A DNA stretch of 64,000 bases from Ylistrum balloti. Its lineage: Eukaryota. Below the pieces are notes generated by a model. That model worked only from the letters and a program-made list of their open reading frames with translations. It made no database searches and was not told where the DNA came from. The stretch is from contig NW_026781887.1 in assembly GCF_031769215.1 (NCBI RefSeq), forward strand, positions 186,001 to 250,000, read 5' to 3'. Positions within the stretch are counted from its first letter, which is position 1; each line of letters starts with the position of its first letter. This document shows positions 21,301 to 48,865 of this stretch, piece after piece. Both the position numbers and the translations under genes were made by a program.

Positions 21301-24300
21301 ATTAGGATTCCTCTGTTGCATCCGAAGTTTCCACAATTCAGCCCCTTATCCTGTATGGACGAAACAGGTATATGATGCAGTTAAATTGTTTGGCTCTACT
21401 GTATCTAATTTGTATTGAGAGGTTCTATTTTTGTTCATTTAGTAACCATAATGCCTATTTCCTTGTATTTTAGGTTTACAATGGCTTCATGAATAGGGTT
21501 AACATATCATTCTAGCTAGGAGAACAAATCTTCAATAATGCATGTCGTCTCTCTTAAGTTTAACCTAAGACCTTTGACCTTACACAGGACGTTTCGGTCG
21601 ACAATGACTTTGTATCACTTCTACATGAGGTTCAGAAACAACGACAAATGAAAGTGACGTATGGTAATCTGTTACGTCACGACGAGATACGTCGCGGGAA
21701 CGCTAGCTGGGTACTGGATAGTGATGATCCAGTGGCAATCTTGTTTGAATACATGAAGCAGAAGAATTTGCGTCTGATCGACCTCCTCCACAATCTGGAC
21801 AAGGACAACAGCGAGACACTGTCGAGGGACGAGCTCCAGATAGGTCTGTCGGTGAGTAAACTGACACAGCTCCAGTTAGGTCTGTCGGTGAGTAAACTGT
21901 CACAGCTCCAGTTAGGTCTGTCGGTGAGTAAACTGACACAGCTCCAGATAGGTCTGTCGCTGAGTAAACTGTCACAGCTCCAGTTAGGTCTGTCGGTGAG
22001 TGAACTGTCACAGCTCCAGATAGGTCTGTCATTGAGTAAATAGACAAAGGTCCAATAAGGTCTGTCGGTGAGTAACCAGACACAGGTCCAGTTAGGTCTG
22101 TCATTGAGTAAACAGACAAAGGTCCAATAAGGTCTGTCGGTGAGTGAACTGACACAGCTCCAGTTAGGTCTGTCGGTGAGTGAACTGACACAGCTCCAGT
22201 TAAGTCTGTCGGTGAGTAAACTGACACAGCTCCAGTTAGGTCTGTCGGTGAGTGAACTGACACAGCTCCAGTTTAGTCTGTCGGTGAGTAAACTGACACA
22301 GCTCCAATTAGGTCTGTCGCTGAGTAAACTGGCACAACTCCAGTTAGGTCTGTCGGCGAGTAAACTGGCACAGCTCCAGTTAGGTCTGTCGGTGAGTGAA
22401 CTGACACAGCTCCAGTTTAGTCTGTCGGCGAGTAAACTGGCACAGCTCCAGTTAGGTCTGTCGGTGAGTGAAATGACACAGCTCCAGTTAGGTCTGTCGG
22501 TGAGTAAACTGACACAGCTCCAGTTAGGTCTGTCGGTGAGTAAACTGTCACAGCTCCAGTTAGGTCTGTCGCTGAGTAAACTGGCACAACTCCAGTTAGG
22601 TCTGTCGCTGAGTGAACTGACACAACTCCAGTTAGGTCTGTCGGTGGGTGAACTGACACAGCTCCAGTTAGGTCTGTCGGTGGGTGAACTGACACAGCTC
22701 CAGTTAGGTCTGTCGGTGAGCGAACTGGCACAGCTCCAGTTAGGTCTGACGGTAAGTAAACTGGCACAGCACCAGTTAGGTCTGTCGGTGAGTAAACTGG
22801 CACAGCACCAGTTAGGTCTGTCGGTGGGTGAACTGACACAGCTCCAGATAGGTCTGTCGGTCAGTAAACTGACACAGCTCCAGTTAGGTCTGTCGATGAG
22901 TAAACTGGCACAGCTCCAGTTAGGTCTGTCGGTGAGTAAACTGGCACAGCACCAGTTAGGTCTGTCGGTGAGTAAACTGACACAGCACCAGATAGGTCTG
23001 TCGGTGAGTAAACTGACACAGCTCCAGTTAGGTCTGTCGGTGGGTGAACTGACACAGCTCCAGTTAGGTCTGTCGGTGAGTAAACTGTCACAGCTCCAGA
23101 TAGGTCTGTCGGTGAGTGAACTGACACAGCACCAGTTAGGTCTGTCGGTGAGTGAACTGACACAGCTCCAGTTAGGTCTGTCGGTGAGTAAACTGGCACA
23201 GCACCAGTTAGGTCTGTCGGTGAGTGAACTGACACAGCTCCAGTTAGGTCTGTCGGTGAGTGAACTGGCACAGCACCAGTTATGTCTGTCGGTGAGTGAA
23301 CTGACACAGCTCCAGTTAGGTCTGTCGGTGAGTAAACAGACACAGCTCCAGTTAGGTCTGTCGGTGAGTGAACTGACACAGCTCCAGTTAGGTCTGTCGG
23401 TGAGTTAACAGACACAGCTCCAGTTAGGTCTGTCGGTGAGTAAACTAATACAGCACCAGTTAGGTCTGTCGGTGAGTAAACTGTCACAGCACCAGTTAGG
23501 TCTGTCGGTGAGTAAACTAACACAGCACCAGTTAGGTCTGTCGGTGAGTAAACTGGCACAGCACCAGTTAGGTCTGTCGGTGAGTAAACTGTCACAGCTC
23601 CAGATAGGTCTGTCGGTGAGTGAACTGACACAACTCCAGTTAGGTCTGTCGCTGAGTGAACTGTCACAGCTCCAGTTATGTCTGTCGGTGAGTAAACAAA
23701 CTATCATATACGAGTCAGGTGAAACGGTTCCGGTTTGGATATTCAGGTATGTGTATATCTTTTTACGTTTGTCAGTGAATATTGATATTAGTGAGATTGT
23801 TATAACATAGTCAGCGAATAGCAAGAGTTACAATAGCGGAAAAGAGCATTATACTTCATATGTACTTTGTCCATTACAAGTTGTTTGGCTTTAATGAACA
23901 ATACTTCTAGCAGTTTGTATAATCTTTAAAAATGCTTCGTTAGCTAAGTTTGTAAAAATCACTCTAGTAACATTGTAGGATTCTATTTTGAAAAAATATA
24001 CGAAAACAACCTTATACTTTGAATCAAACATCGAAAAGTGTGACGAAACATTGCTGAAATATTTAAATTAGTCATTTAAACAGTGGAAATTTCAATAAAA
24101 TATTGCTTGATTTTAGATTTGATAGCAGTCTATTCTAAATAATAGATGCCTTATCACTTTCAGAACAACGACATTCCTCTGAGCAGTAGATCTCTGGATA
24201 TTTTGATGAAGCGCCTGGACACAAACAACGATGGACATATCACATTTGAGTAAGTTTATCGTCTAATGTTTAAACCGTTCCTACATAGAAATAGAACATA

Positions 24301-24999
24301 TTGTCTCCATATAATAATAGTTTGGTTAGTAGTAGCCAGTCAGGTGGACATATCATAAGTTTTATATCTAGTCAATACTACATGAAAAAGACAAAGAAGT
24401 GCCAAAGTAAAGAGACAAAGACAAAAATGACATATGAGAAACTACTCCCGATCTACAGGATATCCCTGAGCTAGCAAGCTTCAAATGTATACCATATAGA
24501 GAGGCATCAGAGTTAGGAGTCAAAAATGGGGGGCGGGGGGGGACTTAAAAGATTAATAGTACAAACACACTAAGAAGATGGGTTATAAAACAATGGAAAT
24601 ATGTGTCATTAACATTATCAACAAACAGACACGGGGCGATCTGTATACCTAATATAACAGTTGTCCACAATGCACGTATCTAGAAAAGCAAAGACATCAC
24701 TCATGACCTCCAGACCTATGGCATGCTGAAAACTGGTGGGTTTAAAATAGCATTATTACAAATGTGTTTATTCAGTTGACATGATGATAGTATACGAGTA
24801 TTATAACTGATATTTTCTCACCAGGGAACTTGCTGCAAAACACAAGGATTACGTAAGGCGAGCGACAAGACTACGTGTGCAAGCTGATGAAAGTCTTAGT
24901 CACTACAAAAGTTTTGATAAATTGGAGCAGATACGAGAGGCCGTCAAACTCAAGATAGCTCTTAGTGTCACCATAAGGCCAAACGCTACCAACAAGTGA
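12304..24999 (+). CDS. LRRC74A: LRRC74-like protein (RI-type leucine-rich repeats plus C-terminal EF-hand pair), 12 exons, 563 aa
   Basis: Exons 12304-12550, 12698-12909, 14579-14686, 16374-16467, 17732-17781, 18272-18353, 18597-18682, 18890-19084, 20769-20861, 21588-21851, 24164-24249, 24825-24999. All introns GT-AG, phases consistent, 1692 nt in total. Motifs: YTKACNKLGLVPSTYF..HHGIGPRGAKAVAIAL (LRRC74 N-terminal block as I recall it), repeated LxxLDLSxNxI (TIKTLDLSSNAIG, LQSLDLRWNHLR, LKSLNLSWNGFG) and EF-hand loops DKDNSETLSRDE and DTNNDGHITFEE. The A versus B paralogue call is not resolved. Confidence 0.85.
15029..15125. repeat. Diverged dispersed repeat, family B, copy 3 (intronic)
   Basis: 'atgacgaccatagaac...ttttcatcaacctgtatcattagaaacactg...gtcagttgacgacatcttgcac' matches 4255-4355. 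Confidence 0.5.
16698..16870 (+). mobile_element. tRNA-derived SINE copy (family A), intronic
   Basis: A-box-like 'gtcgtagtagtaac', B-box GGTTCGATTCC at 16743-16753, then 'aaaaggtatgaggtcacctacccaaacatgatggttttccccgagtact', homologous to 3360-3545. Confidence 0.7.
21832..23697 (+). repeat. 36-bp minisatellite, ~52 units, spanning the exon 10 donor of the LRRC74-like gene
   Basis: Unit ctccagttaggtctgtcg|gtgagtaaactgacacag. The first unit overlaps the last ~20 nt of exon 10. Confidence 0.97.
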
Positions 25000-27900
25000 C
25001 CGTACTGTGATGGAACAGTAACCTTCACAAACATCATATCTGTAACACCCGATTGAAATAGTGTTGTTAACACGACATTTTAAGAATAATGGACCTTTTT
25101 TTTATTTTCGTGTTATGTACATAGATTTCTAAGCATATTTTGAGAACAGAAACTGTCAAATAAACAATTTTCGCTATGTTCGCCAGAATATTTGAAATTG
25201 AAAGTTGTATTTAAATGCACTTCTTTATTTAACAAAAACGTTAACTGCGCAGTATATGTAACATGAATATTTAAATAAAGCGTGACATTATTTGTATATA
25301 TCACCATGCTTTGTTATCACATATTTTCTGCCTACGTGTCTGATCAGTTATACTTCGCCCTTTGTACAGTACAGGTATGTAGAATTCTTCAGAATAATCA
25401 ATCTTAAACAATTTTCAACAAGAATGTCTTATGAAAGTTAATTCTTCATCTAAAAGAATTTTATACCAACATCTGGTTGAAAGTATTTAACTCCAGTTAT
25501 ACCTACATAAGCCAGTTAATTTTAAGTTTCAGAAACTTCTCTCTAATGTCCGTTTATCTGTACCTGATTTAGCAATACAAGGACGTACCAAAGGAAGAAA
25601 GAAAATGAACGTTATATAATGAGAACGATATAAAAGACGAATGTAATTTTATCATATAATATAAGTGTTACGCAGATATTCGTACCAAATTTAATTAAGC
25701 CATATCATTTTAATGAGTCTAGTATGCTGAGATTCATTCAGTTACTGAAAGTCGAAATTATAAAAGAACTTAATAATTTAGGAAAGTTTTTAACATCAGC
25801 AAATAAACATGAAAGATTTATTGTACCAATTTAATTAGTATTTTCGTGGTTTCCTCCAGAAGTATAATACCAATATTATGAATAAGGACAGAGGATATGA
25901 TGGTAAGAGTGTGAGTGTCTTTGTTCTTTTGACTGTTATTTATCCAATAAGTTGTATAACTTACGGAAATTAATTTAATAGAATTATCTCCTCTTCGTTA
26001 TGAGTGATTTGTTACTTAAAAGAAAGTTATTCTATGGTATTGGATAATATATTATCCACTTTGGAGACTGTATATTAAATTTGTTGTTACACATTCATTA
26101 CAATTTGGGTTTTTTTGTTTTGTTTTTATATTTCATGCCTAACGCCTCATCATCAGACGTTACATAACTTCAAATGTCACACCATCCTTTAGCTCTCAAA
26201 TAAAATATCTTACGAGTTATTGATTCTGATTCAGATACATGTACTCTAGAGAAAAAACACCCGTTTTAACAGGATATCATCTGGCTGAGGAAAAGATCAT
26301 ATTAAGTATTGTGGACGATTCGTCACGTACATGTTAACATGTTCATATCATCCTTGTATTCAAACCTTATCAAATTGTGTTTATTTGTTTTGTTTTTCTG
26401 TTCCAATTATATTCGATGTATCTTTGGAAGGTTACACTGTAATGTGAATTAATGACCGTGTTTTGAATTTAAGAAGACTAAAAGTCCAGCAGCAGTGTCT
26501 ATGCTATCACAAGGAGTGTAGAAAAGACACGAGTGAATAACACCTTTAAGACAAATTACGAATCAGATAGAGGAAATTAATAACGACTTGAATTGCAACA
26601 TTTCATCTATTTCATACTTCTAGAAATGTTCAGTAATGCTACGGGCCTAAATTTTGAAATCTGGAGGTGACTGAGGGAAACCAAAATTGATCGGGAAAAT
26701 ATCAAAATGTAGATTTGGAGGTGCCCAAGCCCAATATTTTATATTCGTTGAAAGATTTTCCTATGTCTGCAAAAGGAGGTCAAGCACGTGTATATTGTAA
26801 ACGTGTTCTGTGAATTAAATCATGGTATGTTGATACAAATAGATGTATCCACTTTTAAAAATCAAAGAAATAGTCAGAAATACTTTCTATAACATTTATT
26901 CATTCACTCTTACAATACCAAATCACTCTCACTTCACTGCACCTGTACTGTTAAATATTTAACAGCATTCTGCTCAACTCATCATTTAAACCCGATAATC
27001 GTTTTGATACAGTTATTATCAATAAGATTTACACACAGCTAACATACCAAAACATTATTACTCACTACTGATCTATGAAATTAAAAATTCTTCATGATAT
27101 ATAATTACAAAATATCACCCCAGAATTACACTGTGGCAAAAGTCTAGTAGATACGACATGTTACATTAAAAAAAGGGAAAGCACTGTTATGGTATCTGTC
27201 TGTCAAACTCAGATGTATCTTCATTTGCATGGCAACCCTTAAGCATAACATAATAAAATGGATATGAAATTAGAATGGTCAAAATTATCTGAATTTCATT
27301 TTATGTGAAAACCAGCAGTTCATCAAAACCTGTGTCAAATCTTTATTACAACATGAAGCATTCACATGTCCATATTTATAAACCATCTTGAAAATTATAT
27401 TTGATTATGAAATTTAAACACTGTTTATAATTAAGGTATGTTTTACACAATGAACAAAGATCTAATGTAGCATCTTTAGTTGCAGTAATCACATAGGAAT
27501 TGCAATTAAATCTGCAATTAATTAATTTTCTAAACCCAAATCTCCCCTATCCCTACCCTGACTCTGAAATAAAAATCAAAGATACATGCTACACAGACAA
27601 TCCTGCTGTCAAAATAATTCCACCAACCATATCAAAATTTGAATACCTCACTATACCAGATACAACCACAACATACAACTACCAAAAAACTCACACACTC
27701 CCATTCCCACTAATCACACACCATTACCAAAACAATAACATACTATCAGTGCAAATCTCATCCAAACATTCAGCACCATTCATTGCTTATTAAAGTTCAA
27801 CAAACATCTGATATTTCCTAGATACAGGTATAAAATATGCATCTGATACTGTAGATACCTTTCAAAAGTTGCAATCGTATTTAATGTTCATTGCCATAAA

Positions 27901-29773
27901 ACACTCAACAATCACACATTATGAACAAAGAAGCGCTTGTGGGGGGGAAGGCAATTATTTCATAAGATGAATAGATTATACTTTGATGTGAAAAAAAGCA
28001 ATGAACTTCACATTAATTACATAATAATATTACAAATTATTTACTTAACAAGAAACAATGTGTACATGTACACAAAATTTACATAACAGCAGCAACAATA
28101 AGTAAACCACCTCTTGGTACATTTCTGTCTTTTTTCATTTTTGTTTGGTCAAATAAGTGTTGTAGATGTGAAAACAAGGAAGAGAAGCTAGCTTGACATA
28201 ATAAGAGGATATAGGTACATATGTCCCTGTCTACATTAATTTGTAAGTACTAAATAAGTATTAATTTGCTATTAAAATGGAAAACTATTATACAATGTAC
28301 ACCAAATGCATTATTCTTCAGGAGAACTAGGCGAGACAGGAGCTGTTTTTGAGGATTACAACATCAAACAGCAATCAGTAACCTAAATTCAAATAAAATG
28401 ATGATCTAAATCACCAATGAAAAATTATGCAGATTTTCAAATATCAAAATAGATCTTAAAAATGGATGAATCGTACATTTGTCGCTACAGAGCATTACTT
28501 CAAACATTCATCTATTACACCTAAAATGTCTATATCATGATCTGATTGATCTGTAAATCAATGCACTAAGATGACAATTTACTCGGATGCCAGATGATAA
28601 CTCTGGAAAGATTGATTTAGCTCAGACACGAGAGGAGATACAACCTTCTATAACAAATTGAATGTATGCGGAGAGGTGAAATACAGTTACTAATAGATCA
28701 ATGACCCACTCACACATATCTCTCTCATGTAAAGTCACTAGAACTAAACATGGATGGAGTCTATAACAATTAATATACAGTATGGCAACTCCTTAACAGA
28801 ATTGGAGCAAAACTTTGTATTCCTCTGTGTTATACCCCAAATCTTAACAATAAGTTAAAACAAATTTGCTGAGTACAGATTGCATGTTACACACTTACAC
28901 TGACAATGTTATAGTACATACTCCCAGTAATTCTGATCTGTTACTGAAACAGGTGGTCAAATTATTGTAAGCACAATCATGTTAACTGTATAGAATAAGG
29001 AAGAAAATCAACACCTCAATATGAAACATGATACAATGAGTCAAATATCTATTCTACTGAATCAATATTCCCTTGAAATACATTTTTTTCAAAATAAAGA
29101 AAAGGGACTGATGTAAAATAAATTCATCGTAACACTAGTGATGTCAGTATATCACTTCCAGTACTCTTGTACAACATTTAGCAGTTGTCAACTGTGAGAA
29201 CTTGTTTACATTTATGCATAATTTGGACAATATTTCTAAACATTATCAACACGATGGTCTACATATCCTTCAATATGTTTATATGCTTGTCCTCAGATTC
29301 TCTTCTACTGCTGAAAATGATACTAAGCTCTTAGTCTTTTTGTTTTGATGAGGAAAAACAGTTCTGTTAAATAAAAGAAATAGGAATGCCAAAAAACTGT
29401 GTTTTTTCTGATGTCTTACATCTATAAAATTGCCCTGAAAATCCCCGCTGGAAGCAAATCCTACAAGTGTATTGATACTTTTACCTGGTATATTGCTGCC
29501 ATTTCCATCAGAACCCAATCAAGGCCTTGATTACTTATTAAATGATAGACTGTTATGAATTACGTAAATTTTTTTCATACAAGATCAAAGCAATCATTAT
29601 CGAGATATCAACATTATATGATGATGTCTGTTCATCACATTATTACTGTTATATGCCACACCTGAAAACCCTTACCATAGAATATATCATACTTTTTTAA
29701 ATGTTCGGTTTCAACCATCCCCAACTATAAAGCACATTTATTGTTATAGAAGTTATAACAGAAGTCCTGTGTA

Positions 29774-32375
29774 CTAAAGCCTGTTTGTGCTGTACTCATT
29801 GGGAAATTTAAACTTGTGAGATCCTTCTCCTCTGATTTTTGGCAAGGTTCCAGCATTAGGAATGACATTCCATGACAAAGTCAGAGTCACGTTGTTGTTT
29901 CCTCTACAAATACAGAAAATGGAAAGTCCAGAGGATATGACACACAAATATGGCAAGAAAATTCTCACAATTATCAATACGACAAACACTATAGCAGAAA
30001 TAGCAATTAAATGACCGCTGTCTAGCATATTGAATAATAGTGCATCTTCATGTACATTTAGATTACAGTGTATCTCACTGTACTCTTAGGTTCCTTACCC
30101 AACATGAACAAAACAAAAAGCATTATGTCATTATAACCTTATACTCCTATCCGGTTTTCGTTGTTGTTCATTTATGAAATAAGGATGAACTTACAGATCT
30201 GATTTTGATTTCTATCAAGCTTCAACTAAGCCTTACAAGGCCTGTATTAATATTTGAAGATCTGTTCTGATTTATGCAGGAAATTTTACATATAGAATAG
30301 TGATGAATCAATTTGTTTGCATACATGAAGAGCAAAAAAAAAAGAAATATGGTAGCGTTCTCTCAAATGTGTCATATTTAGGTACTTCATTAAACTTATC
30401 AACCAATGTAATGTTCAGAAATAAAGGCAAATGTGTAATTATAAAACTTCACTTTAGAAGAAAGTTATTTTTTTCTACCCAAATGGAAATATAACTATGT
30501 TTAACACAAAAAGATTCTTACTTCAGGCCATTGCCATAATCCCAGAAATAATATTTGGTATTGCTGCTGCGGTAGTCAAGAACAGAGTTCTCTCCCCTCT
30601 TAATGATTTTGTCCCAGATCACCACCTGGTTTAAAACCTATAAAGAACAGAATAAAGTACAATGTAATTTCAAGATATACCATAAACATGTAATGTCATG
30701 CTTTCTGCCTATTCTTTACTGCAAAATATGTTTTACATGTAAAAAATACATTGGTGTCTGCAATCAAGCACAATTCCATTTCTATTCAAACAAATTGACT
30801 GCCCTGCCCTTAGTAAAGCATGCCACAAACCAAATATTGGGTATCGTGGATATTGTTAATAATCTAGAATGTAGAAATGATTAAATGTAAGATCAAATAA
30901 TTTCCATAGCATGGCCTTGTCCTTCACGCAAAGTTAGTGATGAGTTTATAAAATTACACCATAAATATCACTGTCAGATGATCAAACAATCAGGAAATGC
31001 TAACACTAGCTATAGGGACCTGAATGCATCCAGCCCTTCTAGTCCCAGATTTTATTATCATACTTACATGATCTTTTGTCTCATATTCTGCTGTCAGATA
31101 CAGGAACAATTGCTTCACATTCCAGTTAAATATCCTTGATAAATGTGTGTGTGTTAAAGAAAACTCTTCTCAGAAAAGAAATCACACTGACATTAAGAAC
31201 TGTAAGTATCCATTTTAAAATGCAACCTTGCTATCAGGATTCAACAAAAGCAGAAAACGCTATCTCTTGTACCATGTTTACTATAAAATTAAGCATTTTT
31301 GGAGGATGTATCTTCTTAATCTACAAATTCATATGCCCACATATTGTTAAAATAATCATATATAGATTTATTGAGTTATAAATACTTATGAAATCAAGTG
31401 TCTACGAAATAGTATTTTTTTTTAAATATCGAAAATTGAGCCCAATATACCTAAGATTAAAAATGCTTTTAAAGGATATCTGCTTGCATATCAAAGACAA
31501 CAAATCCAAGGTCATTCTTTTCTCTTGTGGCGCTGTAGTCGGGAACATTTTTTCTGCAAAAGACAAAAGAACTCAACAATTGTGTTCTTCTGCATGTTCA
31601 AAATATGAATGGATCCTAGGGAGACATTGAATTAAATAACCTCTGTTACATTGGTACTCATGTATGCACTCAGGAATAATACTTCCATATGCACCACAAA
31701 GTAACCCCTGAAAACTCGTTATTTCTTATTTATTTCTTGGAAAGGAGTATCTAACCCTTGTGAATATTTGCAGCAATATACCACTTGCCTAGAGAGACCA
31801 CTTCAGTTTGGTCATTTGGGTATAAGACCAGGAAGTCCCAGGTTTGAGTCCTAGCAGAAACATTGAAATAAATGGTAATCTCTGTTACATTTAGTCATCA
31901 AAATTTAAAACATGTACAGTTATATGTATTCATGCACATGACTTAAGGATACAGTAGTAAATGCTAACATCTGTCGGTCATCGGCACCACTAAATCATTT
32001 TAGGAACAGAGTTAGTCTAGACGAAAACAGACCGCAAATATCAAACATGATCACAGGCTCGAATATACTATCAGAAATTAAACATACGGTACATGCCTGA
32101 CCACATACTAGGAAGACACAAATATAACATATCTAAGTTGCATGTGAAGAAAAGAAAAGGCCACTGGTATGAAGAAACGTCCAGATGGTGGCCTAACAGC
32201 TCATGAAAGCCGGTTATGTATCAATTGCTTACACTATGGTTTTCCCAGTTCCAATGTATACCAGGGCTTTGTGTTCATTGAAAGCCGTCGTAAGGAAACA
32301 ACAGAAAGTCAATCCCGCCATCACACTAAGTGTGAAGGCGAAAATTGTATTCAATCTGGACAGAAATGTGTTCAT
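29774..32375 (-). CDS. SPCS3: Signal peptidase complex subunit 3 (SPC22/23), 5 exons, 179 aa
   Basis: Exons 32375-32233, 31553-31480, 31144-31068, 30637-30522, 29903-29774 (143+74+77+116+130 = 540 nt). Translation MNTFLSRLNTIFAFTLSVMAGLTFCCFLTTAF...[45 protein letters not shown]...VLNQVVIWDKII...GNGLKGNNNVTLTLSWNVIPNAG is clearly the SPC22/23 family. Confidence 0.97.
31145..31479 (-). other. U12-type (minor spliceosome) AT-AC intron, SPCS3 intron 2
   Basis: 5' end ATATCCTTT (31479-31471), branch site TTTCTTTAAC (31162-31153), 3' end AC (31146-31145). These boundaries restore the conserved ...[15 protein letters not shown] frame. Confidence 0.93.
31795..31895 (+). mobile_element. Degenerate tRNA-related SINE-like fragment in SPCS3 intron 1
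   Basis: B-box-like 'gtcccaggtttgagtcctagc', followed by 'ctctgttacatt', which recurs near 31640. Confidence 0.35.
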
Positions 32376-32655
32376 CTTTCCTGTGGCTTGTTGGCCGGAA
32401 GTGTTCGTCAGCTAAAATGGTCAAGTATAATTGAAAGAGTTGGACGAAATTCCGTAAAAATAATATTTGTTGTTTGATCATTTAAAATGTTTTCGAACAT
32501 ATGTAGATATTATAGTGTCTCTGCTATTCACGTATTATTTATATAAATATAGTTATTTATATTTTGTTTGATTATATAACAGTTGTTGTATTTTTTATGT
32601 CAGTCCGGAATTGCCATTTTAATTTTAGTTTGATTGATAGTCACATGATTGAATC
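32376..32655. promoter_or_regulatory. Putative bidirectional promoter, SPCS3/PRCP
   Basis: Divergent start codons only 280 bp apart, which must also hold both 5' UTRs. Contains ETS-like CCGGAAGT (~32394-32401) and CCGGAA (~32605). Confidence 0.6.
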
Positions 32656-35600
32656 ATGGCGGCTAAGTTAAACCAGTTCATTTTATTTCAGTCATTGATT
32701 TGTGTGTTATCTATATTATGTGTTGAATCACTGCGAAAAGGTTTTCCTCATCGGAAGTCTCACCAACTTAGGGAAAGTGGTTATGCTTACAAAACAGCGT
32801 ACTTCGAACAAAAGGTAACTAACACTTTCAGTTTAAAATTGTACCACGGGCACGCTCTTCGACAGTTCTTTTCCGTTTTTATATTATGTTCGTTATTAAT
32901 TGGTTGATATTTCCATAATTGGCCAAACAACATATCTGTGTTTTTGTTATTGACAAACTTATAGAACGTTATAGAGGTAGACAATTGTGTGGGTGTTGTT
33001 TTTGCATGAGTTATCTCCCATCGACTGTGTTTATGGAACACTACGACCTGTTTTACGTGCATACAATACATGTTATTATCATTACTACTATAGTTAGAAG
33101 CTAATTATAATTGGTAATAAGTGTATGTATACACATGTACCATTTTGGCCAATGAATTATTTGCAAAATATCAATACTTTTTTTAAATAAGCAAGATTGA
33201 AAAGTGTTCACAATCTTCATGATATCTCTCTTACCACCGTTTTCAAGGCCTATATGGATCATATATATTCAACTACCAAGAAACAGCGATAATTGAACTT
33301 GAGTACATTTATTTGATACAAATGAAACATTTATTTAACATTTACTAAGGGAAGGTAACTCAAGAGAGCTTGAAGCTTGGATTTGAATTTAAACAACACA
33401 CATTTCAGTAAGTAAACCTTGGAAAATGTACCTGTGTGATCAGATCATCTGTAAAGAGCCTGTTAATGATCAGGACAAGACCCAGATTCAATTCCTGATT
33501 TGGCCGCTTGACTGGAATGTGTATTTTCCTTGTTCTTTTACACATGTACGGTACATCTAATTTTAGTCCAGATGTACTCAGATAAGTTTCTGCATGCCGC
33601 TACAGTCATTAACATAAAAAAAATAGTATCATTATATAAGTACTTCAATCTTTTATATTTCTAGGTCGACCACTTTGGATTTGCCAATGATGACACATAT
33701 AAACAGAGATATCTAGTGGCTGACCAATTTTGGGACAAAAATGGTGGACCTATATTTTTTTACACTGGTAATGAAGGAGACATTACATGGTTCTGTAACA
33801 ATACTGTGAGTATCTGTGTGGACCTATCCTGCATCCTTTGGCAAAAAATATCTTAGTGGATATATATTATGAAATCAGTTTATAAATATATATCCATGAA
33901 AAATTTCTATAAATAATTCCAATATCCATAATTTGAAATAGGGACATTCCACAATTATATCCTCAATTCATTTGTCAGTTTATTGATATTAACAGATGAT
34001 TTGCGGATAATCAAAAATGATTAATGGATAACCATCAATGGCAACATTTTATCACATTTTTCTTAGTTTTGGCTGGATATATTCAATATTTGCTTGTGTG
34101 AAAGCTTGTTGGTTCTTGGCATCAATACATTATATCAGTCAACTTCATTCTGAGTGAAATAAAAGTTAAATACCTATCATATTTCATAATTCAGAAACTC
34201 AACATCTAGTGATTTCTTTTTATAGCATGTTCTGGAAAGCTATATGAAAATGAAAATATTTGCCTATTTTTTCAAAGAAATAGTTGACATGTACATGTAC
34301 TTGAAATATGATGTTATATGGCCCCAATATGCAAGTATATGCATGAACTGGTTGCTGTACAATGTGGATATACGTAGCTAAACTATTCTAGATCCAGAAA
34401 AATTTCATTTGAAACATATTGTCACATTTCATTTGAAATTTGTATTTTTGATGATTTTTTATAAAAAAAAGTCTAAATTTGTGGGTTTAATTGTATGGGG
34501 GCAAAAATGCAGATCCCCACATTTGGGCCTGTAGGGCTGGCTGAAATGGGGGAGTTTGATTGCATTTCAGATACTTCTTCTCCAGACTGAAGAACTGTAG
34601 AATTAAGAAAATTTCGATAGATTGAAAAGTTCCAAGGTGCTTTGTCAGAATTATAAATTTTATATCCGAAAGTCCTCCATTTCACTCTAGGGAGAGAGTA
34701 ATTTTGCTAAATCATTTATACTGATGACTTGAGAAAATGACCATTTTGTTTTGGATATTTTAATTCTCTTTAGTGAGAAATAATTCAATTGTGACTGGAG
34801 TTGCAACCACCAGATCTCAGTTTGATAGTATATGATTCAGAACCCACCCCTAGGGTTTGAAGGATGGAACACAAAAGTGGAGATTTGCTTATATTTCAAA
34901 ATCTTCCAGACCCAGATACTGTAGATTGATAAACTTTCTATGGATGGAAATGTCCCAGATTTATTGTTAAAAATCATTTTGTCAACAATTTTGCTATATA
35001 TTAGACTTAATAAGTAAAATGCCTTTATAGATATATCACATTTAATGGGCATATTAACAAAAATGGCAAATATGATAATGTTTGAAATGATATTCAAAAC
35101 ATAGTAAGCTTACATAACACTTTTCTTTTATGTTCTTATTCAGGGATTTATGTGGGAACTGGCCCCTAAGTTGAAAGCCCTGCTGATTTTTGCTGAGCAT
35201 CGATACTATGGTGCTTCTTTGCCTTATGGTGCTGATGCTGCTAAGGTAATTGAGTAACATGCTTCAACCAAATGGAATTATATAATACTGCTAATTTTAA
35301 CACATATTATAAAACCATTAATGTGTTTTTTGATAGAATGAATGTAAGGAAATGATGCATGTTCTACAAAACAAAAATTTTAAATATGTAAAAATTCCAA
35401 AGTGAGATTAGTTTGATGTGGGCAGATACAAGTTCCAACTTGTCAGTAGAAACATGAAAAAAAAACAATACAATGTAAAATTTGAAAGTTATCTCTCACT
35501 ATTTCTTCATCACAGGATCCTAACAAACTACAGTATCTGACATCTGAGCAGGCACTGGCTGACTTTGCTATACTGATCCAAGAGTTGAAGGCCAATGAAC

Positions 35601-38600
35601 CAGGAGCTCAGAACAGCAGAGTGATTGCCTTTGGGGGATCATATGGGGGAATGCTGGCTGCTTGGCTGAGGATCAAATACCCTAATGTTGTGGATGGGTA
35701 GGGTACAATGTCAGATTCTAGATCAAATACCCTAATGTTGTGGATGGGTAGGGTATAAAGTCAGATTCTAGATCACATACCCTAATGTTGTGGATGGGTA
35801 GGGTACAATGTCAGATTCTGGATCAAATACCCTAATGTTTTAGATGGGTAGGGTACAATGTCAGACTCTAGATCAAATACTCTAATGTTGTGGATGGGTA
35901 AGGTTAGACATCAAATTCTAGATCAGATACCCTTATGTTGTGGATGGGTAAGGTTAGACATCAAATTCTAGATCAGATACCCAAATGTTGTGGATGGGTA
36001 AGACCCAGATACCCAAATGTTGTGGATGGGTAGGGTACAATGTCAGATTTTAGTTATTTAACCTAGATCAGATACCCTACCTGTGTAGACAAATTTTTTA
36101 TGGATGGTTGACACTAATGTCATAGAATATAAATAGTTTCAAACCTTAATTGAACATTTTATATGCATTTTTAGTTTTAGATAGCCCACCATATTCAGAT
36201 GATGTACAAATAATCAGATAATGTTGTGGATGGGTAAGGTTAAACATCAAATTCTAGATCAGATACCCAAATGTTGAAATTCTAGATCAGATACCCTTAT
36301 GTTGTGAATGGGTAAGGTTAGAAATCATGAAATTCTAGATCAGATACCCAAATGTTGTGGATGGGTAAGGTAAAACATGAAATTCTAGATCAGATACCCT
36401 AATGTTGTGGATGGGTAAGGTAAAACATGAAATTCTAGATCAGATACCCAAATGTTGTGGATGGGTAAGGTAAAACATCAAATTCTAGATCAGATACCCT
36501 TATGTTGTGGATGGGTAAGGTAGAAAACATGAAATTCTAGACAGATCAAATGGGTTAAAACATCAAATTCTAGATCAGATACCCTTATGTTGTGGATGGG
36601 TAAGGTTAGACATCAAATTCTAGATCAGATACCCTTATGTTGTGGATGGGTAAGGTAAAACATGAAATTCTAGATCAGATACCCTTATGTTGTGGATGGG
36701 TAAGGTAAAACATGAAATTCTAGATCAGATACCCTTATGTTGTGGATGGGTAAGGTAAAACATCAAATTCTAGATCAGATACCATTATGTTGTGGATGGG
36801 TAAGGTAAAACATGAAATTCTAGATCAGATACCCTTATGTTGTGGATGGGTAAGGTAAAACATGAAATTCTAATGTTGTGGATGGGTAAGGTAAAACATG
36901 AAATTCTAGATCAGATACCCTAATGTTGTGGATCATGGGTAAGGTAAAACATCAAATTCTAGATCAGATACCCTTATGTTGTGGATGGGTAAGGTAAAAC
37001 ATGAAATTCTAGATCAGATACCCTAATGTTGTGGATGGGTAAGGTAAAACATCAAATAGTTAGATAACCTTATGTTGTACCTGTGTAGACTAGATCAGAT
37101 ACCCTAATGTGGATGGGTAATGTTTCAAACCTTAAGGTAAACATGAAATTTATATTTGCATTTTTAGTTAGTTTTTTTAGCCCACCATATTCAGATGATG
37201 GACTTATCAATCAGATACCCAAATGTTGTGGATGGGTAAGGTAAAACATGAAATTCTAGATCAGATACCCTAATGTTGTGGATGGGTAAGGTAAAACATG
37301 AAATTCTAGATCAGATACCCTAATGTTGTGGATGGGTAAGGTAAAACATGAAATTCTAGATCAGATACCCTTATGTTGTGGATGGGTAAGGTAAAACATG
37401 AAATTCTAGATCAGATACCCTTATGTTGTGGATGGGTAAGGTTAGACATCAAATTCTAGATCAGATACCCTTATGTTGTGGATGGGTAAGGTAAAACATG
37501 AAATTCTAGATCAGATACCCAAATGTTGTGGATGGGTAAGGTAAAACATCAAATTCTAGATCAGATACCCTTATGTTGTGGATGGGTAAGGTTAGACATC
37601 AAATTCTAGATCAGATACCCTTATGTTGTGGATGGGTAAGGTTAGACATCAAATTCTAGATCAGATACCCTTATGTTGTGGATGGGTAAGGTAAAACATG
37701 AAATTCTAGATCAGATACCCTAATGTTGTGGATGGGTAAGGTAAAACATGAAATTCTAGATCAGATACCCTAATGTTGTGGATGGGTAAGGTAAAACATG
37801 AAATTCTAGATCAGATACCCTAATGTTGTGGATGGGTAAGGTAAAACATGAAATTCTAGATCAGATACCCTTATGTTGTGGATGGGTAAGGTAAAACATG
37901 AAATTCTAGATCAGATACCCTAATGTTGTGGATGGTTTGGGTACAATGTCAGATTTTAGTTATTTAACCTTCTACCTGTGTAGACATTTTTTATCAATGT
38001 TGACACTAATGTCATAGAATATAGAATAGTTTCAAACCTTAATTGAACATTTTATATTTGCATTTTTAGTTAGTTTTTTTAGCCCACCATATTCAGATGA
38101 TGGACTTATCAATCGCCCTTCATCCATCGTCTGTTGTACCTCCATCCTTAAACAATTCTTGTTATCACTACCAGGTATTTCTTGATCATTCTCAAGTTTC
38201 ATATGTAGCTTTACTTTTTTCCCTAGTTCTGCATAGCCCATTTTGGGGATGATCAGAGAAACAAGTCATAGTTTATCATGGCTGTTTCTGGAGAAACATT
38301 GGATAGATCATTCTCAAACTTGATATGTAGCCCAGGTTCACCGTAGTTTCGAGCTGTGCACAGTGAATTTGATGAAATGATCAGAAAAACAAGTTGGCAT
38401 CTTGGTTTTTCGACAATTATAGTTTGTAATCACTATTGCTGGAGAAGTGTTGGATGGATCATTCTCAAATTTCATATGTAGGTTTGTTTTGGTTCCATTA
38501 TCCAAATAGACAAACATTTTGGTTTCTCATACTCATAGTTTGTTATGACTAATTCTGGATAAGTACTGGATGGATTATTCTTAAACTGTTGCTTCATATG

Positions 38601-41600
38601 CAATTTTAGTTTAGTTCTTAGTTTTGCATAAATTATTTTAGGACTGAGCAGAAAACAGGATGGCAAATAGGTGGTGATCTTGTGCTTTGAAAGCTATTGT
38701 TTGTTACTGCTGTTTCTGCAGAATAGTTCGGTAGATTATTCTCTCATTTCATATGTAGGTTTGCTATAATCTGTAGTTATACCCTTTTTTATTTTTTGAC
38801 TGATCAGAGAAGCAAAATGGGAGACAGGTAACATTCTTTGAATTTGACAATGAAAGTTTGATATTTCTATTTCTTGAGGAGTACTGAATGGAGCTTTTTT
38901 AACTTTGATATGTTGGTTTCACTTGGTACGATATTGTGCCCTTTTGATTTTGGAATTGATCTGAGAAACAAAAAGCCAACAGATAAACATCTTGGATTTT
39001 GCAGTTAAAGGTTATTACCACTGTTTCTTCATATAATGATGAGCAGAAACGGAGGAAAGAAGAGGAAAGAAAGTTAAAGAACAAAATAAAGATAAAATAT
39101 TGGTGGGCATAAATTCAAGATCCCTCTAGGATCTCTTGTTCTCAAGGAAGGTGTATTCTATGTCTATATTTTTATGTCTGAAACAATTTGCATCTTTGTT
39201 GATCTGCTGGAAAGTTGTATTTGATTCTTTTTTATTAAGTATGTGAGTCTTGTCTAACTAGAAAAGGAATAATCTTAAAAAGACCATTTATATATGAAAA
39301 ATTTTCAAAAAATAAAATTAAAATTAGTAACTTTTCCTGTCATTTGGTAGCTGGAGATTTGTGATTTTTTCCAGGTCCCTCGCTGCCTCTGCCCCTATTT
39401 GGAGCTTCATAGGTCAGATCCCTTGTGAGGCTCAGTTGCAAGTTGTCACCAACTCTTTCAAGAGGGAGTCTTCAACCTGTGTCAAAAACATCAGGAAGTC
39501 ATGGGGTGTCATCAACACATTAGGTGCTACAGGTACATAATGTCACAGATTGTAAGGACAAGCTAATTCACCATACAACACAATGGAGGCTACATGTACA
39601 CAGCATCACAGATTGTAAAGACAGGCTAATTCACCATACAACACCATGGAGGCTACTTGTACACAGCATCACAGATTATAAAGACGAGCTAATTCACCAT
39701 ACAACGCCATTGGGGCTACTTGTACACAGCATCACAGATTGTAAAGACAGGCTAATTCACCATACAACACCATGGAGGCTACTTGTACACAGCATCACAG
39801 ATTATAAAGACAAGCTAATTCACCATACAACACCATTGGGGCTACTTGTACACAGCATCACAGATTGTAAGGACAAGCTAATTCACCATACAACACAATG
39901 GCAGCTACAGACAAGCTAATTCACCATACAACACATTGGGGGTTACAGACAAGCTAATTCACCATACAACACATTGGCAGCTACAGACAAGCTAATTCAT
40001 CATACATCACATCGGGGGCTACAGACAAGCAAATTCATCATACATCACATCGGGGGCTACAGACAAGCAAATTCATCATACATCACATCAGGGGCTACAG
40101 ACAAGCTAATTCACCATATATCACATTGGCAGCTACAAACAAACAAATTCATCATACATCACATTGGCAGCTACAGACAAGTTAATTCATCATACATCAC
40201 ATTGGCAGCTACAGACAAGTTAATTCATCATACATCCTGACTATATTTAGTATGTTTATGTATTATAGAATGGTCAATATTGGCTATTACATTACACCAG
40301 CAGTAGTTTGGAACTTTATTTCCTGTGTTGATTTATGCTTTGCCAGATCTAATTTGGTTACATATTTCATGAGCTTGAAGTTTATAAAAGAGAAGCATAG
40401 TTTCAAAATGGAACACTTCAGTTTGGTAGGTTTACTAGAATGCATAGACAATGTTTTATAAGAGTCCATATCAAAGGAAGCTCTGTTTTGTCATACTTTT
40501 CTGTACCAAATAAGCTGTGTATTGGCTGAAGCCAAATAAACGAAAGATTCTCTCAAAGTTTTTTCATCTTTTGTATTCTTTTATCTTTACCAAAACCTAG
40601 CTTGTGTGACATTACCATTAATTCTCCATATGTTGCCCCAAAAGTTTAACAACCATTATTTTATTTCAGACTTGGGGAGGGCACGCCTTTCCACCACATT
40701 TGATTTGTGTGCACTGTTGAACACGAGTGCAGATGCAGGTGCCCTGAAGTCATGGCTGTTAGAGGTCATGTTTAACCTGGCTATGGTAGATTATCCCTAT
40801 CCAGCCTCTTTCCTTGAACCTCTGCCTGGCTGGCCTATCAAGGTGAGGTCTTTTTCTGTATAGTACCAAATCCTAAGCAAGGTATATGTAGTTAACACTT
40901 TATCTAATTATTAAGGTCCATTTATTGCTTTAGCTCTCTGGGAGGTCAGATAGTGACTTTGACTACAGACACTTTCTTAAAATGATGAGTAGAGGAACAG
41001 GAAACTTTGTACTGAAAATATGTTGTAAATCCATTGGAAGGTTATTGTGAACATCCATGTTTTCGTGACTTGGATCTATATGTTTGAAAACTGTTTTATC
41101 ATCTGTTCTTTCTTCAAAATAATATTCAATTGACCAAAGATAGAAACAAACCAGTTGGTAGAGAAACTCTTATATAAAATAGATGTCATTTTGTATACCA
41201 AAATAAGGAAACTGTTACCCATTTCTGGACCAGGACAATGAGAATAAATTCAGGTGATCTACAGGTTTGAGAATGGGGTCACCACAAACTGTATGTAGCT
41301 TATGAGATCATGGTTATAGCTAATATGTTTATTTTTTATTTTTTACATACAGGCTGTGTGTGGCCCTTTGTCTAATGAAGTTGTGGATGATGTAGCCTTA
41401 ATTGAGGCTCTATCTAAGGCAGTCAAAGTATACTACAACTACACTGGTCAGGCCAAGTGTTTAGATGTCAATCAGAATGCAGTGGGAAGTCTTGGAGATG
41501 AACTATGGGGATATCAGGTAAGCAGTTTTATAGTGACCCTCTTTATTCTGGAATAGAGAAACTTGTTCAAACAATGGGGATATCAGGTTAGTAGTTTTAT

Positions 41601-43753
41601 AACGACGTCTTAGTCTGGAATAGAGAAACTTGTTCAAAGTATGGGGATATCAGGTTAGTAGTTCTATAGCGACATCTTTAGTCTTGAATAGAGAAACTTG
41701 TTCAAACTCTGGTGCTCTCAGGTTAGTAGTTTTATAGTGACGTCTTAGTCTGGAATAGAGAAACTTGTTCAAAGTATGGGGATATCAGGTAAGCAGTTTT
41801 ATAGTGACCCTCTTTATTCTGGAATAGAGAAACTTGTTCAAAGTATGGGGATATCAGGTAAGCAGTTCTATAGCGACATCTTTAGTCTGGAATAGAGAAA
41901 CTTGTTCAAAGTATGGGGATATCAGGTTAGTAGTTCTATAGCGACATCTTTAGTCTGGAATAGAGAAACTTGTTCAAAGTATGGGGATATCAGGTAAGCA
42001 GTTCTATAGCGACATCTTTAGTCTGGAATAGAGAAACTTGTTCAAACTCTGGTGCTCTCAGGTTAGTAGTTTTATAGTGATGTCTTAGTCTGGAATAGAG
42101 AAACTTGTTCAAACAATGGGGATATCAGGTAAGCAGTTTTATAGTGACCCTCTTTATTCTGGATTGGAGAAACTCACCCAAATTCTGGAGCTATCAGATA
42201 AAAAGCAGTCTTATAGCGACGTCTTAGTCTGGAATGGAGAAACTCATCCAAAACCTTAATTAGTTATTTGGAAATTTTCGACTCATTTTGTACTGATGTA
42301 TCAAATCATCATTTAAAAATCAATCATTGAGGTTAATTTGTCAAAGAAAAGTTAGGTTAAAAGTGTGTTCTCATTTGTTCTCATCTATAGATGTTAAATA
42401 TTACTGACAAGGTATGTAGATAACTACAGGTTATCATTCTCTGTTTTTGTCACATACATACAGAATAGAATTTGTGATTACATGTACATAAGGGCTCTCA
42501 CTGAAAACACCTGTTATCAATATATCAGGATACTTAAGACAGTTGACATTGATGCATTTAACAAATATCAATGTTTTGGAAATTGCATTTGTACATAACA
42601 GCGATAACTCACATGTTGCTTTTAATTACAATAGAAGGATGTAAAAGGCGTTACAGAATATTGTAACAATATATCAATATTTTAGCCAGTTGATGATATA
42701 ATGCTGCTTTTTTCCCTTCAGTGACAGTGCTTAATTTTATCAGAGATCTGAGTATGCTTACACAATGTTTTATGGTACCAAATTTTTAAAGTGAACATTT
42801 GCAGTATCCTCCTGATCTAGCAAATAAAAGCCATAGATAGTTAATAACTGTTTACTTTAATCTCTGACCTAAATTTCCACAGGCTTGTACTGAAATGGTG
42901 ATGCCATCCTGCTCCAATGGTGTGACAGACATGTTTGAACCTACCACCTACAACTTCAGTCAGGTTTCTGATGAGTGCTTTAAACAGTTCAAAATCCGGC
43001 CGCGGAAGTCTTGGGTCATAACAGAGCGGAAAGTCTTGCCAGCAATATCATCTTCAGGTAAACAGTTTAACAGAGTAGGGTTTCAAGTCTTGGGGGAAAA
43101 ACATTAAAACTGCCAGCAATATCATCTTCAGGTAAACAGTTTGTGCAATCTTGACAGAATTTTCTACGATAGGGTTTCCTAGTTCCTTCAATATTGAGGG
43201 TTTTAAATACAAATTACGTAATCAAGAAAAGAACCCTTAATGAGCCCCTGGTTTTCATCTTGATTTCGCAATTACCATCTGTAGGACTCTATTAAACTCC
43301 CTTCCTGCACATATACTTGTACAAATCATATACTTCAAATCACAACATGTCCTGATATGTTCTGTGGTGATATGGATAACATCATGTCTGTAGTGAAGGG
43401 GCTATTCATTTTAAAGAAAGGGTCACTAAAAAAGATGACACCCATTACCTTTGGTATGTTTGAAATGACTTCATGGATATTTTGAAGAAGTATTTGATAT
43501 TTTGAAGAATTATTTGTTCTTGTGGTAGTAAAAAACTTCATTACTTGTTGACAGTAACGGCCTTCTTGACCCGTGGTCTTCTGGTGGCGTGCTGAAGTCT
43601 ATCTCACCCAGTCTTACAGCCATCATCATCCCTAATGGTGCTCACCATGTAGATCTTCGTACCTCAAACCCAAAGGATACACCAGACATCACCAAGGCTA
43701 GGCAGACAGAGGAATATATCATTAAAGGATGGGTCAAGGGAGACAACTCATGA
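32656..43753 (+). CDS. PRCP: Lysosomal Pro-X carboxypeptidase (prolylcarboxypeptidase, S28 family), 9 exons; exon 8 frameshifted as assembled
   Basis: Exons 32656-32814, 33665-33805, 35144-35245, 35516-35697, 39375-39532, 40670-40842, 41353-41517, 42883-~43131 (3' end scrambled), 43555-43753. Signal peptide; [24 protein letters not shown], nucleophile motif [24 protein letters not shown], catalytic Asp in [11 protein letters not shown] and His in GAHHVDLR. Confidence 0.95.
35671..37936 (+). repeat. 50-bp minisatellite, ~45 units, spanning the PRCP exon 4 donor
   Basis: Unit gatcagatacccttatgttgtggatgg|gtaaggtaaaacatgaaattcta. The first unit is the last 27 nt of exon 4 (gatcaaataccctaatgttgtggatgg). 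Confidence 0.97.
38074..39140 (+). mobile_element. Non-autonomous Helentron-associated (HINE/DINE-1/Pearl-like) element
   Basis: T-run then subterminal motif TTTAGCCCACCA (~38078-38089) with inverted partner TGGTGGGCATAAA (39101-39113); 3' hairpin GATCC-ctcta-GGATC then TCTTGTT (39119-39140); about 5 diverged internal repeats 'gat(c/t)attctcaa.tt.atatgtag'. Confidence 0.7.
39510..40240 (+). repeat. Compound minisatellite (63-bp x ~6, then 38-bp x ~9) spanning the PRCP exon 5 donor
   Basis: Exon end catcaacacattaggtgctacag|gtacat aligns to the unit catacaacaccatggaggctacttgtacacagcatcacagattgtaaagacaggctaattcac. The 38-mer is the same unit minus 25 nt. Confidence 0.92.
41505..42245 (+). repeat. 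~67-69-bp minisatellite, ~11 units, spanning the PRCP exon 7 donor
   Basis: Unit atggggatatcag|gtaagcagttttatagtgaccctctttattctggaatagagaaacttgttcaaaca. The first 13 nt are exonic. Confidence 0.95.
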
Positions 43754-43802
43754 GCTCCTCATGTTTCCTGGACAGAATTATTGTTTTAACAGTCACTACT
43801 AT

Positions 43803-43916
43803 ACAGTTTATACTTGGTAACTAAACAGTTTATACTTGGTAACTAGTTAACTAGACAGTTTATATTTGGTAACTAAACAGTTTATACTTGGTAACTAGAC
43901 AGTTTATACTTGGTAA
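43803..43916 (+). repeat. 22-bp tandem repeat x ~5 in the PRCP 3' UTR region
   Basis: acagtttatacttggtaacta(a/g) repeated. Confidence 0.85.
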
Positions 43917-47244: not shown

Positions 47245-48185
47245 TGATGAACTCTTTATATATTTATTATGACCAACTCCTTACATATTGACTGTGACCA
47301 ACTCCTTACATACAGACTGTGACCAACTCCTTACATACAGACTGTGACCAACTCCTTACATACAGACTGTGACCAACTCCTTACATACAGACTGTGACCA
47401 ACTCCTTACATACAGACTGTGACCAACTCCTTACATACAGACTGTGACCAACTCCTTACATACACACTGTGACCAACTCTTTATATATTGACAGTGACCA
47501 ACTCCTTACATATTGACTGACCAACTCCCTACATACAGACTGTGACCAACTCCGTATATATCGACCGTGACCAACTCCTTACATATTGACTTTGACCAAC
47601 TCCTTATATATTGACACTGACCAACTCCTTACATATAGACTGTGACCAACTCCTTACATATAGACAGTGACCAACTCCTTACATACACACTGTGACCAAC
47701 TCTTTATATATTGACAGTGACCAACTCCTTACATACAGACTGTGACAAGCTCCTTACATATAGACTGTGACAAACTCCTTACATACAGACAGTGACCAAC
47801 TCCTTATATATTGACAGTGACCAACTCCTTACATACAGACTGTGACAAGCTCCTTACATATAGACAGTGACCAACTCCTTACATACACACTGTGACCAAC
47901 TCCTTATATATTGACTGTGACCAACTCCTTATATATTGACTGTGACCATCTCCTTACATATTGACTGGCTAACTCCTTATATATAGACTGTGACATCTCC
48001 TTATATATTGACTGTGACCAACTCCTTACATATAGACTGTGACCAACTCCTTACATACACACTGTGACCAACTCTTTATATATTGACAGTGACCAACTCC
48101 TTACATATTGACTGGCCAACTCCTTATATATTGACTTTGACCAACTCCTTACATACAGACTGTGACCAACTCCGTATATATCGAC
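47245..48185. repeat. 25-bp minisatellite, ~37 units
   Basis: Unit actgtgaccaactccttacatacag with 22-25-nt variants; abuts the Tc1 remnant. Confidence 0.95.
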
Positions 48186-48865
48186 CGAGTGGGTTTATCC
48201 TCCTCATTGGGGTGTTGTCCCTTTCTTCCAAGAGGGCTGCTCCCAGTTGGGCCAGAGTAACAGGGGAGACTGACGTCGTCGTACCTGTCTATCCAGCTGG
48301 TCCCAAAAGTACTCGATAGGGGATAGGGACTGTATGGCGGCCAGTCCAGTGGAGGGATATTGTTGTTAATGACAGAGTTGCCACAGATCCTGGCTACATG
48401 GGGACGAGCATTATCCTGCTGGAATCTGTGGCTGTTATGCTGCAATAATGTAAAGACATGGGTCGGAGGATCTCTTTATCTAGCGTCAGTTAAATTACCC
48501 GCTACCACAACCAGTGGTGATTTAACTCCATGCGAGATCTCTCCCCACACCATAACCGATCCACCCCTATGCAGCAGTCGGCAAAATGTTCTCCACGATG
48601 TCGGTATACACGATGTCAAACTTCTGCTCGAAACAGAGTGAACCATGACTCGTCAGTTAACAAGTCCCGTCTCCACTGCCTCAATGATGGATAGGACGCC
48701 CAGACCAAGATCTATCAGCAACCCGCCCGGTTTCCCTTAGACGTCTTACAAGACATTCTATAGTACATATATGGACACCTAAATGTCTGGCAACCTGCAT
48801 TTGCCTTTGACCTTGCGTAATCATTGCAATGGCCTGACCCCTCTGAACTCTGTCAGTCGTGCCAT
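48183..48865 (-). mobile_element. Tc1/mariner-superfamily (Tc1-like) transposase remnant with stops, frameshifts and deletions
   Basis: Minus-strand pieces in the expected order: ATG at 48865, HTH GQAIAMITQGQRQMQVARHLGV, SGRP, LLTDESWF (first catalytic D), GGSVMVWG, FQQDNARPH (second D), WPPYSP. Confidence 0.92.

Follow-up and report, generated by a model that had tools for sequence, protein, structure and literature searches.

Tandem repeats that lie across exon-intron borders are known from amphioxus, where they are called 'mirages'. They occur at either border, carry the splice signals, and leave splicing undisturbed (PMC3087553, PMC3902484). The amphioxus genes with mirages include Adh3, the globins BflGb6 and BflGb9, troponin C, and PGBD5 (Canestro et al. 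2002, as cited in PMC3087553 and PMC3902484). In human F7, a 37-bp variable number tandem repeat (VNTR) of intron 7 begins in exon 7; its pseudo-donors go unused because splicing takes the site farthest upstream (Borensztajn et al. 2006, PMC1557585). Under the Rogers model, a tandem duplication that spans an AGGT site gives rise to a new intron (discussed in PMC3087553). No publication on junction-spanning arrays in molluscs was found in the literature searched, the coverage of which was incomplete. Here, four such arrays are described from the scallop Ylistrum balloti (family Pectinidae), in a 64,000-nucleotide stretch (contig NW_026781887.1, positions 186,001 to 250,000; hereafter the window). 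They lie in two plus-strand genes, i.e., an LRR/EF-hand gene and the PRCP gene, which encodes a lysosomal Pro-X carboxypeptidase-like protein.

The window is AT-rich animal DNA. Seven long arrays were detected in it by Tandem Repeats Finder (TRF), and four of them are within the two plus-strand genes. No fifth array was found in these genes between 12,000 and 43,753 at a TRF score of at least 50. The repeat units were located by Hamming anchors. In all four genic arrays, the native exon end and its GT donor form the first unit, in array 3 only at approximately 70% identity. A preliminary description of this DNA had stated that each array starts in the 3' end of a coding exon, crosses the GT, and expands into the intron. 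TRF and the sequence itself bore this out for all four arrays, more weakly for array 3. With approximately 28 donors in 64 kb, the probability of finding the starts of at least four of seven arrays in the 30 nt before a donor is ~1e-6. For PRCP alone, where three of three arrays are at donors, it is ~1e-5. The seeding of arrays at exon-donor junctions was confirmed as real and strongly non-random.

Array 1 (21832-23703, plus strand) is in the LRR/EF-hand gene and has 52 units of exactly 36 nt with no indels. The unit joins 20 nt of exon tail to 16 nt of intron head at TCG|GTGAGT, and the native GT is at 21852. The exon (21564..21851, plus strand) was recognized by its open reading frame (ORF) and an EF-hand loop, and it ends in ...DKDNSETLSRDELQIGLS; position 21564 is the start of the open frame, not a mapped acceptor. 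The exon end lies in the EF-hand loop. The partner loop, DTNNDGHITFE, is in the next exon (24164..24254, plus strand, approximate borders), downstream of the intron that holds the array.

Array 2 (35671-37935, plus strand) starts in PRCP exon 4 (35516..35697, plus strand), the exon of the GGSYGG active-site serine region. It has approximately 41 copies of a 50-mer, i.e., 27 nt of exon tail and 23 nt of intron head, with the native donor TGG|GTAGGG (GT at 35698). It is divided into sub-array A (35671-36029), which is native-like, a unique stretch of ~190 nt (36030-36215), and sub-array B (36216-37935). The array ends exactly where the intron part of the unit continues into unique intron, as is expected of plain tandem duplication.

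Array 4 (41504-42252, plus strand) starts in PRCP exon 7 (41353..41517, plus strand), with the native donor CAG|GTAAGC (GT at 41518). Its 11 units of 67-69 nt comprise 14 nt of exon tail and 54 nt of intron head, and a higher order of five units (~340 nt) is visible. Array 3 (39511-40236, plus strand), at PRCP exon 5 (39375..39532, plus strand; native donor CAG|GTACAT, GT at 39533), is the weak case. It is composed of six 63-mers (~22 + 41 nt) followed by nine to ten 38-mers, and TRF places its start at 39543, past the donor. Both unit types nevertheless align in register with the exon tail, at the identity given above. In shuffled sequences, the observed score was reached in 57 of 2000 trials for the 63-mer and in 3 of 2000 for the 38-mer. 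The 38-mer is the 63-mer minus 25 nt, the donor included.

The exon ends were fixed in three ways, i.e., by PRCP tblastn, by a public protein model, and by the EF-hand loop pair flanking the intron of array 1. The 60-residue translation of the exon at 35516-35695 matched S28 serine carboxypeptidases, and nine PRCP exons were laid out on the plus strand by tblastn with mammalian and molluscan PRCP proteins. Every one of these exons is matched by the public model P0307, 'lysosomal Pro-X carboxypeptidase-like [Ylistrum balloti]', of 490 aa. The scallop PRCP proteins were found from a gastropod PRCP query; a rodent PRCP query (P0076) led to vertebrates only.

Donor use was read from contigs of sequencing run X6, aligned to 38000-43800. 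The tool labelled this run 'DNA?'; it was read as a transcriptome on account of its spliced, exon-only contigs. One contig joins 39405-39529 to 40667-40835. The three letters CAG fit both sides of the join, so that 39529|40667 equals the native junction 39532|40670 between exon 5 and exon 6 (40670..40842, plus strand; array-free in Ylistrum). Another contig runs from exon 8 to the last exon (43555..43753, plus strand, with the stop codon), with the join 43026...43552. Depth is zero over 39552-40521, i.e., array 3, and over 41686-42849, i.e., the greater part of array 4 and the remainder of intron 7. At array 4 the depth stops at the end of exon 7, consistent with choice of the most upstream donor. 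The transcript-like contigs thus show exons 5 and 7 with their native donors, and P0307 uses native junctions as well. The expectation that the upstream native donor is used holds wherever splicing was visible. The sequencing runs found, none of them labelled RNA, come under two organism labels (A and B), which show the same haplotype at 38000-43800.

At array 1, any later donor would preserve the frame. This raises the reading that array 1 is partly coding, i.e., that later donors are used and 12-residue repeats are added between the two EF-hands. The 36-nt unit is in frame, and the frame of the exon holds only four stops in 624 codons, compared with 52 and 118 in the other frames. However, three of the four stops are within the first 99 codons, the open frame follows from a consensus unit without a stop in that frame, and the public product has 563 aa. 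A coding role of array 1 is most unlikely.

The copied donors were scored with a rough position weight matrix (PWM) drawn from general knowledge of metazoan 5' splice sites. GT is kept at the homologous place in 42 of 52 copies of array 1, approximately 37 of 41 of array 2, none of 11 of array 3, and 10 of 11 of array 4. The native 9-mer TCG|GTGAGT is kept in 35 of the 52 array 1 copies and GT is lost in 10; the G of GT varies in 8 of 52 units, which places it with the more variable positions. In array 2, 31 copies have TGG|GTAAGG, which scores 8.7 bits against 7.1 for the native site. No copy in array 3 has a usable donor. In array 4, five copies have CAG|GTAAGC and five CAG|GTTAGT, and the last copy is decayed. 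Across the four arrays, the copied donors are neither consistently retained nor consistently lost.

The preliminary description had also proposed that the arrays may persist as multi-copy U1 platforms or decoy-donor sinks. In this reading, selection would keep them for telescripting, exon definition, or the trapping of decoy donors. The stronger donors of array 2, in a block that is the least variable part of the unit, speak for such a role, as does CAG|GT, which is kept in all ten full copies of array 4. The other two arrays speak against it. Array 3 has donorless copies and a 38-mer subfamily that deletes the donor, and in array 1 the GT itself is missing or variable as counted above. In addition, the arrays are missing from two further scallops in which the gene and its introns are the same, and acceptor arrays, which hold no U1 sites, cannot bind U1. 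For telescripting in particular, the sequence evidence is indirect and mixed. Selection for U1 binding or decoy donors is very unlikely, and the proposal is not supported.

The growth of an array can be followed in array 2. Native-like units stand at its edges, i.e., the first four copies and the final one, and the interior is filled by a derived variant. This pattern fits unequal exchange with poor homogenisation of the edges, as in amphioxus. The stretch of ~190 nt behind sub-array A is repeated behind sub-array B with 88% identity, which indicates that a block of array and flank was duplicated again.

Arrays outside the junctions hold no strong donor motif, the best site reaching 5.9 bits. 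A donor-like motif as a general driver of arrays was rejected on this ground; the motif itself is not the cause of arrays.

DNA contigs of three other animals (X1, X3, and X5), assembled from short reads, differ from the window at approximately 2% of sites. These contigs enter arrays 3 and 4 from the unique flanks on both sides and then break inside; they show the presence of the two arrays, and copy number is not readable from them. These data bear on whether the assembly itself produced the arrays, or their lengths, as artefacts. The breaks, the assembly as the single source of the lengths, and an odd exon 8 in the reference would allow that reading. But contigs of the three other animals reach arrays 3 and 4 from both flanks with no differences in the internal units, and the units differ from each other by point changes in an ordered, higher-order pattern. 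An artefact is scarcely credible.

The PRCP loci of the scallops Pecten maximus and Mizuhopecten yessoensis were compared with that of Ylistrum by mapping the exons. Each intron was also scanned against its own donor and acceptor with 30-nt probes, at most 8 mismatches being allowed (junction echo scan). All eight PRCP intron positions are the same in the three scallops. The arrays are therefore in old introns and no intron was gained, so that intron gain by the Rogers model, which had been brought up as a route, does not apply. The scan found 37 donor echoes in intron 4 and seven in intron 7 of Ylistrum, none at any junction of Pecten, and seven acceptor echoes in intron 5 of Mizuhopecten. 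Introns 4, 5, and 7 of Ylistrum are longer by roughly the array lengths, except that intron 7 of Mizuhopecten is longer still. Since the Ylistrum PRCP arrays are missing from P. maximus and M. yessoensis, they are lineage-specific and arose after the split from the Pecten and Mizuhopecten lineages. They probably turn over quickly. In neither Pecten nor Mizuhopecten do the 10 kb upstream of PRCP contain the LRR/EF-hand gene, so that the cross-species comparison covers arrays 2 to 4.

The acceptor echoes of Mizuhopecten belong to eight copies of a 60-mer in PRCP intron 5. The unit consists of TTCAG and 55 nt from the start of exon 6, and the final copy continues into the true exon. The formation of arrays is thus not specific to donors. 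The comparison of orthologous introns, which had been recommended as a check, supported an origin of the Ylistrum PRCP arrays within that lineage and overturned the donor-only pattern. Likewise, the statement that no array starts at an acceptor or in mid-intron stands for this window, but the PRCP genes of Pecten (intron 4) and Mizuhopecten (intron 7) each have an array in the intron interior.

These results speak against a mutational process aimed at 5' splice sites, i.e., pausing, R-loops, or slippage at the donor, as the seed of the arrays. The window taken by itself favors it, as four of four genic arrays are on donors and none on acceptors. However, the Mizuhopecten array covers an acceptor and an exon start and has no donor-like motif, and the arrays off the junctions lack a strong one. 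A process specific to donors is unlikely.

Several further repeats were observed at the compared loci. The Mizuhopecten intron 5 array (L002 5568-6044) has its eight copies in frame; splicing to the first of the acceptors would lengthen the protein by 7 x 20 residues with no stop codon. Unannotated sequence downstream of the Mizuhopecten PRCP holds two more long arrays, of a 29-mer x23 (L005 20516-21175) and a 68-mer x25 (L005 22104-23843), and the 68-mer contains AAG|GTGACT and AAG|GTTATT. Downstream of the Pecten PRCP, a 55-mer with the donor-like ACGTGAGT was considered as a junction array and rejected; it recurs 2.5 kb away and is more likely part of a dispersed repeat.

PRCP exon 8 had been described as carrying a two-copy duplication of its donor, and this had to be revised. 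The exon has 188 nt in Pecten and Mizuhopecten, compared with 249 nt in the reference haplotype of Ylistrum (42883..43131, plus strand). The difference is a mosaic insertion of 67 nt in place of 6 nt at 43027-43093 (plus strand), specific to the reference haplotype. It consists of five patches in direct order, identical to 43006-13, 43113-42, 43020-26, 43170-78, and 43006-14, all copied from within 150 nt. The patch from 43113-42 takes in the end of the exon together with its donor and 11 nt of the intron. The mosaic is absent from the DNA contigs of the three other animals and from the transcript-like contigs, which have the 6 letters there.

Either donor copy breaks the frame. The resulting exon lengths are 175 and 249 nt, whereas the frame requires 3n+2, and there is a stop within the longer form. 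The frame is preserved only by a 55-nt GT-AG intron (43033-43087), as assumed in the public PRCP model. The donor of this intron, AAA|GTCTTG, is very weak, and the shortest native PRCP intron has 270 nt. The insertion probably breaks the PRCP reading frame, and the likeliest readings of the reference exon 8 are a rare defective allele and an error of assembly. Judging from the order and nearness of its patches, the mosaic looks like a trace of template-switching repair. A tandem duplication of 20 nt (43476-43516), ~40 nt upstream of the last PRCP acceptor, is likewise in the reference and absent from the contigs of the three other animals. Taken with the mosaic, it makes small local duplications seem common here. 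The mosaic, rare and probably harmful, hints at a high mutation input near exon borders, although it is a single case.

The arrays are probably best understood as junction-straddling minisatellites of the amphioxus 'mirage' kind, i.e., a tolerated by-product of local duplication and not a donor-specific device. A short stretch spanning an exon end and the start of the intron would be duplicated locally, probably by template switching in replication or break repair. The initial pair would then expand and be homogenised by unequal exchange, so that the edges stay ancestral and a derived variant fills the interior, as seen in array 2. The spliceosome would take the copy that adjoins the rest of the exon, and the arrays would be tolerated because all other copies leave with the intron. 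The removal of the copies was seen for arrays 3 and 4, and would be expected for arrays 1 and 2. In arrays 2 and 4, splicing at a later donor by mistake would put the transcript out of frame, and transcripts of this type would probably be degraded. The arrays can be explained without assigning any function to the copies.

Some points weigh against the by-product reading. The enrichment of arrays at borders is left unexplained by it, and neutral duplication at a uniform rate predicts mostly intron-interior arrays. In array 2, the exon tail and donor block are nearly invariant in the 31 units, with a mean of 0.44 variants per position compared with 2.17 elsewhere. This could reflect selection on the copies, or no more than one variant having spread. 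For arrays 1 and 2, donor choice was taken from the public gene models and from homology, both with native junctions. The transcriptome status of X6 is itself a reading of its spliced contigs, made despite the 'DNA?' label, and the lengths of the arrays are known from the assembly alone.

It is conceivable, though we hold it only tentatively, that exon borders in pectinids are true mutational hot spots for template-switching duplication, e.g., through error-prone repair of breaks tied to transcription or splicing. Minisatellites would then be seeded steadily at donors and acceptors, with occasional frame-breaking alleles or new splice sites, and the exon 8 mosaic would be one such event caught while rare.

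The public annotation used here is that of assembly GCA_031769215.1, contig JAUZWB010001287.1, where the locus is letter-for-letter identical to window 22656-53753. Three genes are called in it. The LRR/EF-hand gene (plus strand, 563 aa, with EF-hand_7 and LRR Pfam matches) ends at window 24999, SPC22 is at 29774-32375 on the minus strand, and the PRCP gene is at 32656-43753 on the plus strand. No gene is called in the 10 kb downstream of PRCP.

Other repeats were noted along the window. PRCP intron 4 contains a very high-copy dispersed repeat (38388-38940), with a word depth of ~36,000 in three animals compared with ~15 for single-copy sequence. Many contigs join 38484 to 38934 at this repeat, and no terminal inverted repeats were found around it. 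A 22-mer array of ~5 copies (43798-43916) starts 45 nt past the PRCP stop codon, likely in the 3' untranslated region (UTR), and does not include the stop codon. A minus-strand Tc1/mariner-like transposase (~48152-48869), decayed and frameshifted, has a 25-mer x37 array (47270-48185) adjoining its 3' end; the region 47270-48869 is intergenic by the public annotation. A 21-mer array of ~32 copies (61727-62409) has a higher order of 42/63 nt and is open in all three plus-strand frames, and no known gene is there.

If the frequency of arrays found here holds genome-wide, scallops would provide hundreds of natural experiments on splice-site choice, in each of which dozens of copies, as strong as the native site or stronger, come after it. 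Scallops would also be a tractable system for why exon borders attract or retain tandem duplications, a question that dates from the amphioxus 'mirages' in few genes. There is a practical meaning as well. The arrays add kilobases to introns, vary between related species, and can mislead gene prediction, of which the 55-nt intron forced into the public PRCP model is an example.

As in the F7 VNTR, the first element spans the boundary, and pseudo-donors identical to the authentic donor or stronger come after it. F7, however, is a single locus with few repeats, and its rule of choice was shown by mutagenesis, whereas in the scallop it is inferred from transcript contigs and gene models. The likeness to the Rogers model is limited to exon 8, where the insertion copies a donor into the exon and the public model then needs the 55-nt intron to keep the frame. 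In contrast to that model, the four arrays lie in shared old introns, and the putative 55-nt intron ignores the copied donor and has a very weak donor of its own.

The amphioxus mirages are, with the F7 VNTR, the closest of the described systems. Like the mirages, the scallop arrays are head-to-tail minisatellite-like units across an exon-intron boundary, with the junction as the outermost unit, and either border is hit, the acceptor case being the Mizuhopecten PRCP. Splice signals are present in many of the copies but not in all. Regular splicing appears undisturbed at arrays 3 and 4 in the spliced contigs, and would be so at arrays 1 and 2 according to gene models. The interior is homogenised and the edges are not. 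The mirages vary in length, and the scallop arrays may do so as well, small duplications near them being polymorphic; somatic instability is a reported feature of the amphioxus Adh3 mirage. Unlike the mirages, the scallop arrays are found in Mollusca, in Pectinidae, reach ~40-50 copies and 2 kb, and occupy three of the eight introns of one gene. The scallop arrays belong to a kind of repeat known before from amphioxus and from human F7.

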